From: Pelomyxa schiedti
Taxonomy: Eukaryota > Protista > Evosea
Direction of reading: 5' to 3'
DNA length: 64,000 nt
Assembly: GCA_020536535.1 (NCBI GenBank)
Contig: JAHLWZ010000633.1
Coordinates: forward strand, 1-64,000
A program made the translations under genes and the position numbers. The notes beneath the pieces are model-generated. The model made no database searches, was not told the DNA's origin, and saw nothing but the letters and a program-made list of their open reading frames with translations. Positions 2,793 through 11,500 of this stretch are shown here, piece after piece (within the stretch, counting starts at the first letter, position 1; every line of letters begins with the position of its first letter).

Positions 2793-2900
2793 TGCCACTT
2801 CAACGAGCCACTGTTCTTGTTGTTGTATTATGGTAGCATCATTTTGGTACCAAAAGCCACACTGGCTTCAGAAAATAAAAAAAAATCATCACTTTTTTTA

Positions 2901-3643
2901 TCATTTTAACAAGCTTAGAACCGAGTCAAGGGTTGGCTTTTGGTGGATTGTGGAATGAGTTTCAATAGTGCAGGTAGACTTGCAGGAGATAGTATGACAT
3001 TCTGTACAAGCTGAAAAAGAAGGAGATAACAAAGTAGAACAGCCGGAAGAAAGTGAACACTTTGAGCTGTAGTAGAGTATTTGGGACCCCGGCGGGATCA
3101 CTCCTGTACTTCTTTGTTATCCAGCTGTAAATGATGTGAGTTGTAAGGAAACCAAAAAGGAAAGTGAACCTAAAGAAGTAAAGTAGACCCATTGGAATAT
3201 GGAATAGAACTTCCGGCCAGAGAGCAGCAACAAGAAAAGCGGCGAATAAGAACACAAAACAGTAGAACTCCTTCTGCATCAGCCTGTTCAGTGTTTTTTT
3301 TTTGTATGACAAGGTCAGCCAGTGAAAAAATAAGAACGCAATTCCACAATGTAATAATATCACCATGGCAAAAAAGTAGAACACATACGGGGGCATTTTT
3401 TCAATTAAATCGCGTTTATGAATGAACTTGGCGTCATAGTCACTGATGTGTATTACCTATTGGTTGACCCCATAATAGACAAAACAAGAAGTTTTCTGCT
3501 TAGGAATAAAGCGAGAAAAACCCTCCCACAAGTAAGGTGCGTACACCCACCTGAGCGACGATGAATGCCACCAACACCAGGCTGCAGGTGAGGCCACACA
3601 GCCACGACACCATACACGGGGCCACTATCAGTTCCAACACCAT
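2901..3643 (-). CDS. Hypothetical multi-pass membrane protein
   Basis: Hydrophobic ORF 2962-3396 with several TM-like segments; candidate first exon MVLELIVAPCMVSWLCGLTCSLVLVAFIVAQ|gt from ~3643; splicing not resolved. Confidence 0.4.
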
Positions 3644-3916: not shown

Positions 3917-5301
3917 ATGAACGTGGTGGGTGACGGCGACGCCGACGCAAAACGCGACAGCCGCAGCGGTGGCTATGGCGACGCCTCTGGCGGCGTCGGT
4001 GCCGACGCGCATAGCGACAAGGACAACCAGCAACAGCGAAATGAAGAGCAAATGAATCCAAATCCAAATCAACACAAGCAACAAGAGCACGCGGGTAGCC
4101 AAACGACGCAGTTGCATTATAACTGGGGAAGTCCCTCTATCAAGAGGATACTGAAGGAGGTGGCGCAGTTGCAGGGCGACCCGCACACAAAGGGAATCCT
4201 CCACGCCGCTCCCCTTGAGGTGTGTAAAATGGATTTGGTTTTTTTTTGTTGTTGTTTTTTGTTGTTGTTTTTTGTTGTTGTTTTTGTTTTGTTTGTTTTT
4301 TGTTTTGTTATTGTTGTTGCTGTTGCTGTGTAACAGCTGATGTTGTTGCCGTTATTGTTGTTTCAGGAAGATACGTCTAATTGCTTGTACAGGATAACAT
4401 TTTTGAGTGGCACTTTACTCTGAGTGGTGCTGAGGATAGTGACTTTGCGGGCGGACTGTACCATGGAAGAATTATCCTCCCACCAAACTATCCAATGTCA
4501 CCTCCCTCTGTTGTCATGCTAACTGTAAGTCCTGCGTTTCTGTCCTCTTCCTTTAAAGTCATCCCCTTTTAGCCCAGTGGCCGGTTTGAAGTTGGAGCTA
4601 AAATTTGCCTGAGTGCAACAGCATACCACCCAGAGCACTGGCAACCCAGCTGGGGTGTGTCCACTCTACTTGTGGCGTTAAGGTCCCACATGCTAACCCC
4701 TGCCGGTGGGGCCATTGGTGCACTGGATTTACCCTCTGAGGTTAGACGTTCATTTGCAACAAAATCCCGGACCTGGGCATGCCCTACATGCAAAGAGGAA
4801 AACCAACAGCTTCTCCCACCTCCTCCAACACCCGAGACACCCCCACTACCCCCCACAAATGGAGAAACAGCACCCGCAACCACAATTCATTGCACAACAA
4901 CATCTACAACACCGTCTACACCAATAAAGCCAGTCACACAACCACCTGAACGGCAATCAGCTGACAAATCACCACCGGAAATAAAAGCACCCATCCAACA
5001 ACCGCAACCACAATTCGTAGCACAACAAATACCCCCGGCAATGTTATTCCCAATCCCGCAGTATCTACCCCAATTCCCGAACCAAGTACTACAAAACGCG
5101 CTACTACAAGCACCACCACAACAGCATCAACCTCAGACACATCATCACCAACAAATTCGGACCACCTCACAACCACAAACACCAGCAACACAATCACAAT
5201 CCAAGACAGCCAGAAACTGTGTTGATACACTCATAGTCCTCATTTTTGCTTGTTTTGTGCTTTTGTTATTGAGGAAATTTGGCCTACTAATAAATGAATG
5301 A
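3917..5301 (+). CDS. UBE2J1: Ubiquitin-conjugating enzyme E2 J1 (Ubc6 family, tail-anchored ERAD E2)
   Basis: Exons 3917-4219, 4393-4524, 4573-5301 splice in frame; PSGRFEVGAKICLSATAYHPEHWQPSW with catalytic Cys; C-terminal TM TLIVLIFACFVLLLLRK. Confidence 0.93.
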
Positions 5302-5341
5302 AATTTGCAGAGGTTTTTTTTATTGTTTTCGACAATACATA

Positions 5342-5579
5342 CAGTGGTTTGCGAAAGTCGTGAAAAAATTCCGAAACAATTTTTGCATCTGGAAAATTGT
5401 GTGTGGTGGAGGTGGTGTGTTGGTCACGTGGAAGTCGTAGGCAACTGGCCAAACAAGGAAAGCTTCGATGCCTTCCACTATTTTTTGCGTTCCCCCCTTT
5501 CCAACACACCACCCAAAAAAAAATACAACAAAAATCAAAAAAAACAAAAAAATCGTGAGAGGAGATGAGCTGCTACCCC
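5342..5579 (+). repeat. Left terminal inverted repeat (238 bp), includes ATG at 5565
   Basis: Reverse complement of 8189-8426 with one mismatch noticed (ggaaaattGtg vs ggaaaattAtg). Confidence 0.96.
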
Positions 5580-6829
5580 CTTGCCAAACGCCGACGGGTA
5601 TTGAGCCATCAGAACGAATCAGTTGGTGTTGTAGCCCGCATTGAGGGAGTGAGTGAGAGCACAGTACGCCGGTACCGGCAGCAAGGTGTGGAGCAATTCA
5701 ACCACTGTGCATGCAAAAACCACGTACTAGGACCTCAATTAGAAGTACGAAAACGAACTGGGAGGCCTTTTTCTGTGAGTTTTTTGGCGTGTTATATGAT
5801 TGCCTGGACCTTACTCTTGTACCCAGTAGCGACATTAAAAGAGCTCCAGACAGTTGTGCTGGCGGCAACACACGAATTCTGCAAGTATATCCCTCTTTCT
5901 TCAGTAGTATCTCTTAAATATTGGGGTTTGTAGGCTTTGGCAAATCAGCCGTGCAATAAAGAAACTTGGCTTCCGCCTTCGTTTTACTACCCGAAAAATT
6001 ATTGGAGAGAGAAATGAGGTTCGTTGCTGCTGGATACATTTGTCCTACTAATGCCCTGATAGGCACAACGACGGGCCTGGTTTACCAATACTCTTACTGA
6101 GAGTCCTCATGGGTTTGTGTCCATTTCCTAACTCTGTATTCTAATATTACCCTAGTATTTTTTGTGTACCAGTTGAGGTATTGCTCGATCTAGATGAAAT
6201 GGGGTGCACCCTGTTGGATACAGCAAGACGCAGAGGGCACTCCTTGCCTGGTCAACCTGTTCGCACCCATCATGTATGTTTCACCATCCCTCTTTGCAAT
6301 TCTCTTAAACTTGCACTAATAATAACTTAGCCACCACAATCAAAACACCTCACTTTAATAATGGGTGCCGATGTTAATGTTGGGTCTTTGGGTTGTTTCG
6401 TGTTTCCAGGAACACTCAACACATCACTATTCTATGTTTGGCTTGCTGTAGTATTACTCCCGCAAATACGTGGCCAAAAACGCATTTTATTGATGGATAA
6501 TCACAAGGCACACCTTAACCCTTCCATCTTTGCGTTAGTTTCACAGGAAGGTCACCTTCTGGTACCGCGGTATGTCTTTTCTTTTTTATTAGGCCTCAAC
6601 CCTTTTTAGGCCAGTAGCCTCACCTGATCTAGCCTGGATTGAGCTTTGCTTTGCCGAAGTCAAGAGGCGCCTCCGCGAGTCACCTGGTCAAATAACGGAA
6701 CAGAATCTTGCACAACATATTTACAAGGCTGCTTTTGCAATTGATGGGCCACTGGTACAGAAATTTGCGTCTGCTTGCCACTACTATGTTCCTGGTCTTC
6801 CATACACGCCATACACAAACCCATTATAA
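5565..6829 (+). CDS. DD34E transposase (Tc1/IS630 family), ~343 aa, 5 introns
   Basis: Exons 5565-5884, 5934-6018, 6063-6112, 6156-6273, 6331-6569, 6610-6829 give an open frame: HTH (GVSESTVRRY; QISRAIKKLGF), LLDLDEMG, RRGHSLPG, LLMDNHKAH...PVASPDLAWIE with 34 residues between the second D and E. Confidence 0.93.
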
Positions 6830-6864
6830 AACAAAAAATAAAAAAAAATTTTTTTTTTTTTAGT

Positions 6865-8203
6865 TTAGGAACTTTGTGGTGAGGGTGCTGTGCCACTATC
6901 GAGAAGTAGTTCTTGTCTCAGTTGTTCTTGTATTAATTTTACAGCCTTTGGGTAGTCCCGCTTGAGTGCTTCTTCAACTTCAGCATCGTCGTACTGGTCA
7001 ATAAACCTCTGGTAATCATGAACCACAGAAAACATGGCATGAAATAGCACAGCATTTTCAGCACCAGCAATTTTTCTCAGTTTTTGGATTAGAACTACCA
7101 TAGCGTGAGGTGTGGGTAGAGTAAATGAGAAGGTACCTTTGGTTGTTTTTATTGGGTCCGGAGGTGCTTGGTCAGTACATAATCGTTTAGCCGGGTTTTT
7201 GTCTGTCACAGGTACAGCTGGTGGCACTCGTTTTGGAAGAGAACTGACAAAATCAGCAGTTGATTGCCCACATTGACCTGATCTTCCTCCTGTAGTGGTT
7301 GAGTGAAAAGGAATTATTAAAAAGATTTACTTAGATTCATCTGTACACTCTCAGTAAGTGCAGACATGGCCAAAGGGTTGCTTGCCACACACTCAGCCAA
7401 AGCATTATGTAGTTCTGGGTTTTCACTGAGGCCGGCTAGATCCTGCTTGGCCCCTTGCTTTGAGAGCTTGAACTGAAGACTTCTATTTAATTCGGCTGCC
7501 TTTGAGGCAGGCCATTCTTTTTCAGTAGCCTCAGGGTAGGCTGCGCATTTACATGAACAGAACCTGTACAATGTGAAGGACAAAAATATAAGCAACAGTT
7601 ATTACGTACTGGCACACTGTGCAGTGTTGTCGTGAGCATCCTTGGCATGTTCCATCATCAGCAGGATCGCAGCCACCACACCCACAGCCACACAAGTCCC
7701 CAGCATTAATTAATCGACGGCAGTCATCGCAAGCTGAAAGTAAGCAGCCGAACAACATAATTGAATACAGTGCTACTTACCTCCACAAGGATCTGGAAAG
7801 AGTCCTCGGCACCTACACTTGCACATCAACCTATCATAGACGCTTCCAGTTTGCCGGTTCTGCCAATTGTTAGCAAGAACAAGTAAAGAATATTCATTCA
7901 ACATATTCTCACCTGAGTCTGGTCTTTTCCTTTTCCTTTTCCTCTGGAGGATTCTTTCTTTACCCGCAACTCTGTAGGATGCCCACAGCCATAGCACGCA
8001 ATGACCCAGGTCTGGTGGCACAGTTGTTGTGGTTGTGGTTGTAGCTGTTGTGAGTGTGGTGCCGGCATTTGCCACTGTTGTGCTGGCCGTGATACTTGTT
8101 GCTGTGTAAGAAGTGGAGGTGGTGGTGGTAGTGTGATGCCCAGTCCATTCAAGTCCCTGTTTGCAATCGCACAGTCACTATTTACCCTGGGGTAGCAGCT
8201 CAT
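6865..8203 (-). CDS. Transposon-borne Cys-rich protein of unknown function (~370-383 aa)
   Basis: Exons 8203-7913, 7859-7781, 7733-7610, 7563-7331, 7289-6865 (GT-AG, phases compatible; optional 42-nt in-frame intron in the last); contains CKCRC-x7-CGACDDC-x9-CGCGCGGC-x7-CQGC-x4-CTVCQFCSCKC. Confidence 0.85.
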
Positions 8204-8426
8204 CTCCTCTCACGATTTTTTTGTTTTTTTTGATTTTTGTTGTATTTTTTTTTGGGTGGTGTGTTGGAAAGGGGGGAACGCAAAAAATAGTGGAAGGCAT
8301 CGAAGCTTTCCTTGTTTGGCCAGTTGCCTACGACTTCCACGTGACCAACACACCACCTCCACCACACATAATTTTCCAGATGCAAAAATTGTTTCGGAAT
8401 TTTTTCACGACTTTCGCAAACCACTG
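8189..8426 (-). repeat. Right terminal inverted repeat (238 bp), includes ATG at 8203 on the minus strand
   Basis: Reverse complement of 5342-5579. Confidence 0.96.
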
Positions 8427-8505
8427 TATTTACCCATTTGTTCCTTTTTGCTTAACAATAAACACACTTCATTTTGTTTTCATTCAACACCTACTGCTCT
8501 TTACA

Positions 8506-11500
8506 TCAACTTTGTGAGGGTGAACTGTTCAGTGGTGGTTGTGACGCCCGCGAGTGTGTATGAGCACTAGTTCTATGGTGTCTGACTTGACTATGCCCTG
8601 GGGAGTGTGATGCAGAGGTAGAAGTAGTCTGTGGGGGCAGTGCAGAAGTTGCTTGTGGGCTCCTGTGTATGTGAGTAGGAATTTCTACAATGGTGGGGTG
8701 CGGGCTTGTGTTTACGTGTGCCTGTTGTGAAGGTGTGGTGGATTTCGGGTGCGGTGAAGGTTGTGTTTGGGAGCTGGTGCTGCTGTGACTCATGTGAATG
8801 ACAGGGGTAGGTGACTGGTGTTGTTGGAGGGCGTTGTGGTCTACTTTGGAGTGTGGCTTTGTTGTTTGCTGCGGGCGAGTGGTTGCCTCAACCATTTCTG
8901 TTACCTGTCTGTGGCGAACATTCGGCTGCTGAGAGAGGGGCTGTGGAGGGTAGTCTCTAAATTGTACTATGTTTTGCTGTTGCCTTTCGCCTTGAGGGAT
9001 TCGCGTGTGATTACTAGCGTTATGTGACTGCTGTGGGAGTTGTGGTTGTGCTGCCTGACGGGCAGGTATAGTGTTTGGTTGTAGTGTATGTTGACTGCCA
9101 TTTCCAGATAATTCCCGTGATGGTACCCTTGTGTACTGTTGTCGTAGTTTTTCTTCAGGTAGATTGCGCTGAACGTGTCTTGGCCTTTCTGGGTTTCCAG
9201 GAATGGTTGCTTGCTCGACGTGTCTACGTGAAGGCTCAATTTGAGCTTGGCTTGGTTGTGCTGGCTGTGGGTTCGTGAGCTGCTGGGTCTTGGTTGGATG
9301 GTGCTGTTGGGGATGCTGTACCTGTGACTGGGTGTGAACCTGTTGTTGCTGTGTTCGTGACTGTGCCCGCCTTTGTGGTTGTATTGTTTGTGCTGTGAAC
9401 TGTGCTTGAGGCTGCACTGATGTTTCCTGGGAAGGCTTTTGTGGCAATTGAATACCTTCGGCCTGTGGGGATGTGATAGGTGGTAAACGTTGTGGTGCCT
9501 GCTTCTGCGTGTGCGGACGTTCTTGTGGGTGGGTTTGATGTGTGAGAGTTTGTTGTTCTTCGATTTTTTGTTGACCTGGTTGTGTCGCCTGTTGTATTTG
9601 GATATCATTTTGGTCCATTGCCTGTGAGTGCAATTGTCGTGGTTGTGGTTGCACCTGTATCTGTGACGACATTTGTAGCTGTGGTTGAGTCTGCACTGAC
9701 GACGGTAGTACTGCTTGCTGCTGTGGTTGTAGTTGCCGACTTGAATGGTGATGTGGAACAGAGTGACGGTGCTCGCGGTTGTGGGGAGAGGTGTTTATAC
9801 TTGCTTGCTGCGCATCAATAGAATGTCTTGAGTCACTTTGAACTGCCTCTTCTTTTTGTAGGAGCTGACTTGCTTTCTGAGCCTCATATGACATATAACT
9901 GTGTGGCCTAGGTTTTGTGTCACTGAGTGAACCAACGTGGCTGTTATGGGTGTCTGGAGAAATTTCTTGAATTTTTGGTAATGCCACTTGTTCTTTGTCG
10001 TTCATTGGGATTGTGGAAGCTGCCCCGTGGCCCTTATCACTTGGAGTAGCAGTATTTGCAGGTGAGGAGCTAACTGTGGGTGGAGTAGAAGGAAAGGATA
10101 CCGAGTGTGATCTTGAGGGGCGGGAAGCTGGTTTCCAAGGAGCTGGAGCTGGGGGAGCCGGGGCTGGGGATATCGGCCTAGTGGGTAGAACAGCCGGTGC
10201 AGATAAAGTTGGTTGCACTGAATTTGACGTTGTCTGCTCAGAATTTTGGTGCTTTTCTTCTGCCTGCTGGGGATTTGGTGGGGAGACAACCACTAACTTC
10301 TACAAGTTTTGAGAAAGGAACGTTCGCTTTGTTGTTATATCCACCTTATTTGGGGGTGACTTCATCGCATCCTTCAAGTATGTAAGCCATAACTGTTTAC
10401 TATGAACATCAGGACAAATCAGTATAATTGCGGCTGGTTTCGTTCTGTGGGTCACAACGATATTAAAAGAGTCTAATTTTCCGTCAGGTATACAAAGAGG
10501 GTAGGGTGGGTACCATTATCCGTGTCCTGAATAATACAATCTTCAATCAGAAATAGCCCAACCTCAAACCACTTATTTGACCGTACTTTGCAAATTAAAA
10601 TGCAGATGTCAAATAAATAAGCAACATCTGCCTTGGCATCATAAGTCAGAACACATCCTTTCCAGCTAGAACAGACCTTATAACTTTCTCCTTTACTTGA
10701 GAGAGTGCATTTGATTTTCTCCTCCAGAAGAAGATGGACTTTTGATCCAAGTAAGTCGTAAACCTTTCCTACTTAAGGTCTTTTGACACTTGTTCTGAGA
10801 GGAACAGCACACCTTTTTCTTCCAAGTGATATTTGGTTGCAGCTGAGACAGAAGCTGAATGGTGTGAGATGTTTTTGTTGCCTCATTAATTGTAGTCAAC
10901 ATTTTTCGCATCTGAGCAATTGCCGATTCCAAATTCCCATAGTCGACATGGGCTGTAGGTATTGGCATTTCATTGGAAAACGGAAAGAATTTACTTGGGT
11001 CAGTGTGTTTGTATAAATCCTGCAAAAGGAGCGGGTATTTGGTTATCCTTTGAGTTGGTTTGATTAAATAGTTGGACAGCTCAAGACCACGAACAATGGG
11101 GTTCTTTCTTAAAGTCTACAAAGTGTTAGTTCCAAAGACACACTGCTAGTCATACATACCTCCAAGAGTGAAGTAAATTTGATATTTTTTTTTGAGGTTT
11201 CCAATATTTCTTGTGCTTGTTCTCTACTGCAAGCATGTTCAGAATAAAGTTTGAAGAAGGCCATCTTGACAAAGATTTCAGTGGATTACACAGGAAAAAG
11301 GTAAACATACATGCTTCAAAAACGTCCCACCTATTTTTTGCTCAGAAGCAGGTAAACCTAAAGAACATTCAACGAAAAAGGGTTGTGGGCTGGGAACAAC
11401 TTCTCCATTTCTGAAATTCTGACGACATGCTTGAGGCAAGAGACTTGTACTGGGCGATTGGTCCAAAGATCACATTTACTTCCTACCATGAATAAGGTTG

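Follow-up and report, generated by a model that had tools for sequence, protein, structure and literature searches.

The first 64,000 nucleotides of Pelomyxa schiedti contig JAHLWZ010000633.1, the window analysed here, carry at positions 5342-8426 a 3085-bp DNA transposon that is an autonomous two-gene member of the IS630/Tc1/mariner superfamily (DD34E). We consider it probable that each terminal inverted repeat (TIR) of this element is at once a transposon end and the start region, ATG and first codons of one member of a convergent gene pair. For the transposase this would be the left TIR, for a cysteine-rich (Cys-rich) partner the right TIR; transcription would most likely start a few bases upstream of each ATG, from an A-rich promoter in the inner TIR, and the resulting near-leaderless mRNAs would converge and end in a 35-bp A/T spacer. 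The evidence comprises the structure of the ends, spliced RNA from both genes, a tagged cDNA end within the right TIR, and the recurrence of the partner gene, and in some cases of the mirrored start, among related elements.

Element ends and the transposase gene

The two TIR arms differ at a single position (5399 versus 8369) and are 99.6% identical over 238 nt each, an inverted repeat far beyond chance; the 244 nt reported by the inverted-repeat tool include the TA and some flank bases that are alike only by chance. The element ends read CAGTG...CACTG. The innermost 15 bases of each arm are an ATG and four codons, the open reading frames (ORFs) opening at ATG 5565 (+ strand) and ATG 8203 (- strand) both start MSCYP, and the DNA upstream of the two ATGs is identical (Table 1). 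An earlier note, drawn from the letters of this stretch, had described a young Tc1/IS630 element with two ORFs whose TIRs provide both with a promoter and start codon. Its account of the ends (238-bp TIRs, CAGTG termini, TA flanks, one mismatch) is confirmed by inverted-repeat analysis, and so is the common MSCYP start behind identical upstream DNA, the deposited gene model of the partner beginning at the TIR-embedded ATG. The inner TIR segment preceding each ATG would constitute the core promoter and start region. No copy of its AAATCGTGA motif occurs outside the element within the 64-kb window. The sequence AAATCGTGR was considered as a general host promoter motif and rejected; in the same window it is confined to the element.

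Table 1. Coordinates of the transposon, its genes and its transcript features within the window
Feature	Position	Strand	Remarks
TA, left flank	5340..5341	.	target-site duplication, left copy
Left TIR, starts CAGTG	5342..5579	+	238 bp; inner 15 bases are the transposase ATG and codons 2-5
Inner TIR segment: 18-nt A-rich tandem repeat, AAATCGTGA, 6 nt, then ATG	5519..5564	+	mirrored at 8204-8249
DD34E transposase gene	5565..6829	+	exons 5565-5884, 5934-6018, 6063-6112, 6156-6273, 6331-6569, 6610-6829
Segment spliced out in RNA contigs (GT..AG), conserved coding	5775..5826	+	52 nt; stop after 55 aa
136-nt intron, all three RNA runs	6274..6409	+	proximal acceptor 6330 (57-nt intron) needed for productive frame
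A-run/T-run spacer separating the two stop codons	6830..6864	.	35 bp; convergent transcripts end here
Cys-rich partner gene, 369 aa	6865..8203	-	exons 8203-7913, 7859-7781, 7733-7610, 7563-7331, 7289-7137, 7094-6865
Retained 47-nt intron (GTAAGT...CAG)	7734..7780	-	stop after 125 aa on retention
Right TIR	8189..8426	-	238 bp; inner 15 bases are the partner ATG and codons 2-5
Partner cDNA 5' end	8205..8207	-	2-4 nt upstream of ATG 8203, inside the right TIR
TA, right flank	8427..8428	.	

Assignment to the IS630/Tc1/mariner superfamily, as the earlier note had proposed for this two-gene element, follows from the TA flanks, the 5'-CA ends (CAGTG) and a DDE_3-type transposase with a DD34E triad. 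The first transposase exon (5565-5884) contains an optional in-frame intron (5686-5730), giving proteins of 343 or 328 residues. The 343-residue productive model has no internal stops and places the catalytic positions at D165, D247 and E282, with exactly 34 residues between the last two. Database searches were run exon by exon, the joined model being checked for frame only. The Pfam family DDE_3 (PF13358) matches exon 6331-6567 over residues 3-73 (E 1.2e-6; 28.9 bits against a cut-off of 28.6), the last exon continues the same profile, and single-exon ORFs of paralogs score 37.7-46 bits. The protein encoded by 6331-6567 is 56-67% identical across about 10 paralogous loci. At the N-terminus (5565-5882), helix-turn-helix (HTH) families give weak matches below their cut-offs (HTH_23 at E 0.011, and others), and a GRP linker and second-helix pattern can be seen by eye. 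A word-indexed protein search with the 165-residue transposase core returned only the element's own gene model and one ENA fragment, and phmmer against the PDB gave no match.

Transcripts, gene starts and splice forms

Transcriptomes of P. schiedti were obtained from Smart-seq2 and Nextera XT libraries (PMC8887013). The RNA considered here consists of assembled contigs from three single-cell runs (X1, X2 and X3) of one sample in one study; a further run, X4, is DNA-like. Spliced contigs for both genes occur in the three RNA runs, with GT..AG junctions that are absent from X4. The introns removed in RNA are 7095-7136, 7290-7330, 7564-7609 and 7860-7912 in the partner, and 5686-5730, 5885-5933, 6019-6062, 6113-6155 and 6570-6609 in the transposase. 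The 3' ends of the contigs lie near 6816 for the + strand gene and near 6873-6884 for the - strand gene. Spliced minus-strand transcripts, on which the earlier note had staked its two-gene reading, are thus present in all three RNA runs.

For the partner message, a cDNA 5' end is marked by a 1164-nt spliced contig of run X2: beyond position 8207 it carries 22 further nt, which correspond in reverse complement to the 3' part of the Smart-seq2 template-switch oligo. No RNA contigs cover 5302-5569, and RNA depth over 8250-8383 is 0. At positions 7715, 7729, 8088 and 8120 the letters of the RNA contigs match neither assembled copy of the element, and at least two to three copies must therefore be transcribed; transcription of several copies in turn favours an element-borne promoter over read-through from a single flank. 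On the reading preferred here the TIR would act as this promoter, and the left TIR would behave as the right TIR does.

The splice forms recovered in RNA bear on protein output. Continuous ORFs exist only in particular splice forms (343 or 328 residues for the transposase, 369 for the partner), so that the two ORFs of the earlier note are present as frames, but in genes that are both interrupted by introns. In the transposase, the junction excising 5775-5826 is found in X1 and X3 and is absent in the DNA run X4. The unspliced ORF over this segment aligns contiguously (residues 4-93) with a paralog on contig C968, and the segment shows 0 differences and no indel against a 94% identical copy of the element on contig C714. 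Similarly, use of the distal acceptor at 6409 removes 6331-6409, which is conserved DDE_3 coding sequence; neither this interval nor 5775-5826 contains frame-breaking indels relative to the C714 copy. As the 52-nt excision and the distal acceptor each shift the frame, the transposase message encodes only 55 amino acids, and the spliced form may yield a protein with only the first helix-turn-helix. In the partner, X1, X2 and X3 all contain 7608-7862 as one uninterrupted piece and retain the intron 7734-7780. This intron is spliced in the deposited model, and in the C714 copy it shows a 1-nt indel, in keeping with non-coding sequence. Assembled contigs drop rare variants, and productive forms may exist at lower levels; functional protein output probably depends on such minor splice forms. 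Non-productive splicing of this kind recalls the splicing control of the P-element and of MuDR.

The Cys-rich partner, its relatives and the copies of the element

The six-exon partner model is identical to the deposited protein P0008 (Pelo_6453/Pelo_8042), which occurs on two contigs, starts MSCYPRVNSDC and is annotated as a hypothetical protein. Its Cys pattern comprises an N-terminal C(Y/W)xCxH, a CxCxGHxxxNPC, a core CxxC..CxC..CxxCx4CxxC and a CxCxC...W. The N-terminal C(Y/W)xCxH lies in the frame of ATG 8203, which supports this start. The Cys motifs are conserved across at least six subfamilies. Together with the intron positions, and convergent to the transposase, the pattern is found on contigs C714, C753 (two elements), C449, C572 (two), C968 and C1578. 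A Cys-rich partner convergent to the transposase is present in every related element with enough flank. A conserved frame behind the right-hand start, which the earlier note had predicted for other copies, is accordingly observed, with the Cys motif in the same frame and the partner present across subfamilies. The partner is probably zinc-binding, and it would act as a transposition cofactor, for example by binding the TIRs or the transposase.

Searches for the partner elsewhere led largely back to Pelomyxa. A profile of its longest conserved exon, run against 1.84 billion representative proteins, gave seven matches at E<=0.001; six are deposited Pelomyxa models, and all of those traced map to transposon copies, while the seventh (P0007) is weak and repetitive. 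Word-indexed searches with the models P0003 and P0005 returned Pelomyxa proteins only. No Pfam family matched any single exon or the full models P0008, P0003, P0001 and P0005, and no relative was found by sequence search of the PDB. The best score in a feature search of the ESM Atlas, 0.81, is at chance level, and AlphaFold2 applied to the Cys-rich domain with a four-row alignment gave no confident fold, with a mean predicted local distance difference test (pLDDT) score of 51.6.

Similar starts recur in two other subfamilies. The TIRs of related subfamilies start CAGGGG or CACC. In one of the two elements on C753 (C753b), both genes start MPR behind a common AATCGTGR..ATG context whose score was reached by none of 1000 shuffles, and the deposited partner model, P0003, begins at the ATG of this shared context. 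In C968, the two genes start MSYP and MSNSYP just inside TIRs of 206 bp. Beyond Pelomyxa models, a related transposase exon in the ENA assembly ERZ21831265 (eukaryote-like, GC content about 40%) led to 3.3-kb elements that have 27-bp TIRs starting CACCC after TA, and a convergent Cys-rich ORF. This ORF is collinear with the partner in its Cys pattern (hhalign probability 41%, E 2.7e-4; BLASTP not significant). In one of these elements, L053, the start contexts are alike through the ATG (score reached in 8 of 1000 shuffles), and by its sequence a mirrored start is probably present there as well. Three copies were located in this assembly: the two-gene element in L053 (3934-7223, 3.3 kb), a 1.7-kb internal-deletion derivative in L054 (3936-5637), and a third copy in L055 (about 4062-7199). 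In Pelomyxa, the 9.7-kb contig C572 (L046) holds two stacked copies of another subfamily at about 600-2900 and 5000-7900, one with a masked stretch, and a Cys-rich repeat ORF on the opposite strand at 2031-2126 and 6714-6830.

The P. schiedti assembly derives from a single cell and comprises 52.4 Mb in 5337 scaffolds, with 7.4 introns per gene; the paper that describes it makes no mention of transposons (PMC8887013). A second full-length copy of the element, on contig C511, has TA at both ends and differs at 2 of 3085 positions, both in the TIRs. Its flanks are unrelated to those in the window, which together with the two differences indicates an independent and very recent insertion. The element is young, as the earlier note had surmised, and recently mobile. 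Other remains include a 5' fragment on C601, a truncated copy on C1607 whose end is TA-flanked, and three short contigs that terminate within TIR sequence, and loose ends in the DNA-like run X4 show additional insertion sites. A 204-bp deletion junction (5763-5968; GG..TT, not a splice junction) is shared by X4 and RNA run X1, so that there must be an internally deleted copy in the DNA, and this copy is transcribed. The 94% identical copy on C714 has lost element positions 2848-3068, the greater part of the right TIR, and with it the partner ATG. The flanks of this copy (L051 4077-4157 and 6997-7077) form an 81-nt inverted repeat of 98.8% identity, which points to aberrant repair or to a palindromic insertion site. 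In the window, the left flank (5181-5341) recurs at C3957:1-161 with 98% identity, on a short contig devoid of TIR and right flank; this match may represent an allele, a duplicate or a fragment of the assembly. The right flank was found only on C633, the contig of the window.

Purifying selection acts on both genes. When the window copy is compared with that on C714, synonymous divergence (dS) is about 0.10-0.115, and the ratio of nonsynonymous to synonymous divergence (dN/dS), a check that the earlier note had suggested across copies, is 0.17 for the transposase and 0.30 for the partner. In this comparison nearly all indels whose length is not a multiple of three are intronic, including that in the 47-nt intron 7734-7780. 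The exonic cases are single-base changes, located in the final exons of both genes of the degenerate-looking C714 copy.

Alternative explanations and known systems

A number of observations weigh against the reading of each TIR as a transposon end and gene start, and some of them lend themselves to other explanations. The mirrored start is not family-wide: in the old elements on C449 and C1578 the start contexts are without similarity. The earlier note's notion of the TIR as a mirrored expression cassette agrees with the tagged partner cDNA end in the right TIR, but is not borne out in these two elements. The matched transcription and translation of both genes that it had proposed is a conjecture, and the RNA isoforms assembled for both are non-productive. 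In C968 and C753b, moreover, the perfect TIR halts before the ATG, with only patchy similarity beyond, and the outer TIR diverges by about 6% between the window and C714 copies, near the neutral rate. Such features would suit a mirrored start that is a by-product of repair or gene conversion between the ends, which homogenises the TIRs or extends them inward, the shared ATG and five codons being recent and neutral; the partner would then use any available start, and shared regulation of the two genes would not be required. We judge this origin unlikely, and equally the corollary for regulation. Similarity of the start contexts through the ATG is seen again in three Pelomyxa subfamilies with transposase identity of only about 57-65%, and probably also in the element of another assembly whose TIRs measure only 27 bp; even if a by-product, a tagged 5' end in the TIR means that the TIR now supplies the start region. 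The partner, for its part, might be a passenger dispensable for transposition, whether captured from the host or a selfish gene specific to the element, with the transposase alone acting on the TIRs. It has no recognisable domain; it evolves faster than the transposase by the dN/dS values given above, and its BLAST matches fall only within its own subfamily. Tc1/mariner transposases are, in addition, normally self-sufficient (PMC6446368). The same convergent position, intron positions and Cys motifs are nevertheless maintained in every related element with enough flank, purifying selection acts on the gene, and no free-standing host homolog was found among the seven profile matches from 1.84 billion representatives, such that a mere passenger appears quite improbable.

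The transcript evidence invites scrutiny of another kind. The 5' end of the partner is based on one contig of one run, and a second template-switch-tagged end, in run X3, lies at 5747, inside transposase exon 2, where it represents either an internal start or broken RNA; template-switch tags are consequently not proof of a cap site. The transposase contigs begin near 5638, and the 5' end of that mRNA is not seen. If the tagged end at 8207 were likewise broken or degraded RNA, both genes could be transcribed by read-through or from cryptic starts, with no promoter in the TIR. This we regard as very improbable: no RNA contig joins the flank or the outer TIR to either gene, the RNA contig of the neighbouring host gene stops at 8501 with library adaptor, several sequence-distinct copies are transcribed, and the tag at 8207 stands exactly at the edge of coverage, adjoining the annotated ATG. 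Further points of caution are that premature stops interrupt the RNA isoforms assembled for both genes; that levels and minor isoforms are unreadable from assembled contigs of one sample; that the searches above gave no homolog, Pfam family or confident fold for the partner; and that the AAATCGTGA motif is not recognisable as a host promoter element in the 64-kb window. A search of the genome for the TIR, also foreseen in the earlier note, did yield further copies (C511, C714, C601, C1607 and the contigs ending in TIR sequence) but no empty site to prove the TA duplication, both flanks having been searched in the genome contigs.

With the TIRs taken as combined ends and gene starts, the element can be compared with known systems. 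The earlier note had regarded the layout as undescribed, which does not hold: maize MuDR carries a convergent transposase gene, mudrA, and an accessory gene of unclear function, mudrB, between TIRs of about 215 bp that hold both promoters and transcription start sites, and both transcripts show alternative splicing and splicing failure (PMC3440606). The present element resembles MuDR in its convergent genes, TIR length, start in the TIR (here with a tagged end in the right TIR only) and non-productive splice forms. MuDR encodes a transposase of the MURA type, typical of Mutator-like elements (MULE), and generates a 9-bp target duplication. In contrast, the element described here combines a DDE_3/DD34E transposase with a TA target and lacks the diagnostic features of Mutator, the resemblance being one of design only. 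Furthermore, MuDR start codons lie beyond the TIRs, whereas here the ATG and five codons are within the repeat, behind what would be a leader of only 2-4 nt. What is new is thus a two-gene DD34E element with a MuDR-like working, in which the repeat extends over the start codon and first codons, a layout unusual for Tc1/mariner.

Single-gene Tc1/mariner elements also have a promoter in the terminal region (PMC6446368). The element shares with Tc1, Bari and Sleeping Beauty the TA target, TIRs starting CA(GTG), the DD34E core and a terminal start region, the N-terminal HTH being only weakly matched here. It differs from these one-gene elements in that a second gene is conserved, each gene has 5-7 spliceosomal introns, and the right end doubles as a gene start. 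Within the superfamily, members with several genes are known only from ciliates, as the TBE and Tec elements (PMC4724952, PMC7325037). These have three ORFs; TBE encodes a zinc-finger-bearing protein, has one ORF reversed, shows purifying selection on its ORFs and has TIRs of about 80 bp with telomeric repeats, and Tec has TIRs of about 700 bp and a tyrosine recombinase (PMC4724952, PMC7325037). Membership of the same superfamily and an extra gene besides the transposase are common ground, but the present element has two genes only, no telomeric repeats and 238-bp TIRs, and does not classify as TBE or Tec; the partner profile, run against the 1.84 billion representatives, retrieved no TBE or Tec protein. 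Gizmo, from Entamoeba invadens, has been reported as sister to TBE. In PIF/Harbinger elements the transposase works with an element-encoded DNA-binding accessory protein, which offers a plausible functional analogy for the Cys-rich partner. Those elements differ in transposase family, in their TAA/TTA target and in the Myb/SANT-like nature of the accessory protein, and we know of no mirrored TIR starts described for them.

Tc1/mariner is the textbook minimal transposon, consisting of one gene and two short ends, and is the basis of tools such as Sleeping Beauty. From this perspective, the presence in a DD34E family of a second gene that is conserved and under selection suggests that an accessory factor is needed by, or of benefit to, some members. 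With start signals and codons in both ends, a single transposon end becomes recombination site and gene start alike, which constrains the evolution of the ends, and the MuDR parallel points to convergent evolution of symmetric ends expressing two genes. For genetics in Archamoebae, where such tools are lacking, the family provides a defined and apparently active element. Quite tentatively, a distinct Tc1-like lineage of obligate two-component elements may reside in Archamoebae and in at least one further eukaryote; its DD34E transposase would need a lineage-specific, multi-zinc Cys-rich cofactor, and near-leaderless mRNAs of both genes would arise from a promoter, start-site and start-codon cassette within the TIR, with output throttled by non-productive splicing of both messages. 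If true, such accessory-protein dependence would be a first for Tc1/mariner outside ciliates, and the MuDR layout would have been re-invented by convergence.

Some minor features of the locus and its relatives may be added. The window copy is located between the 3' ends of two convergent host ORFs. No Rfam families or tRNAs were found in 5200-8600, and a bacterial promoter and terminator scan, irrelevant for a eukaryote, did not rise above shuffles. Each TIR contains a perfect 13-nt internal inverted repeat (5411-5423 / 5501-5513 in the left arm) and a 7-bp GC-rich hairpin (5457-5476), both mirrored in the right TIR, which are candidate protein-binding or structural sites. Further DDE_3 loci reside on contigs C1371, C185, C355, C1626, C229, C2783, C1557, C174, C792, C294 and C277, of which the C185/C355 pair is identical.

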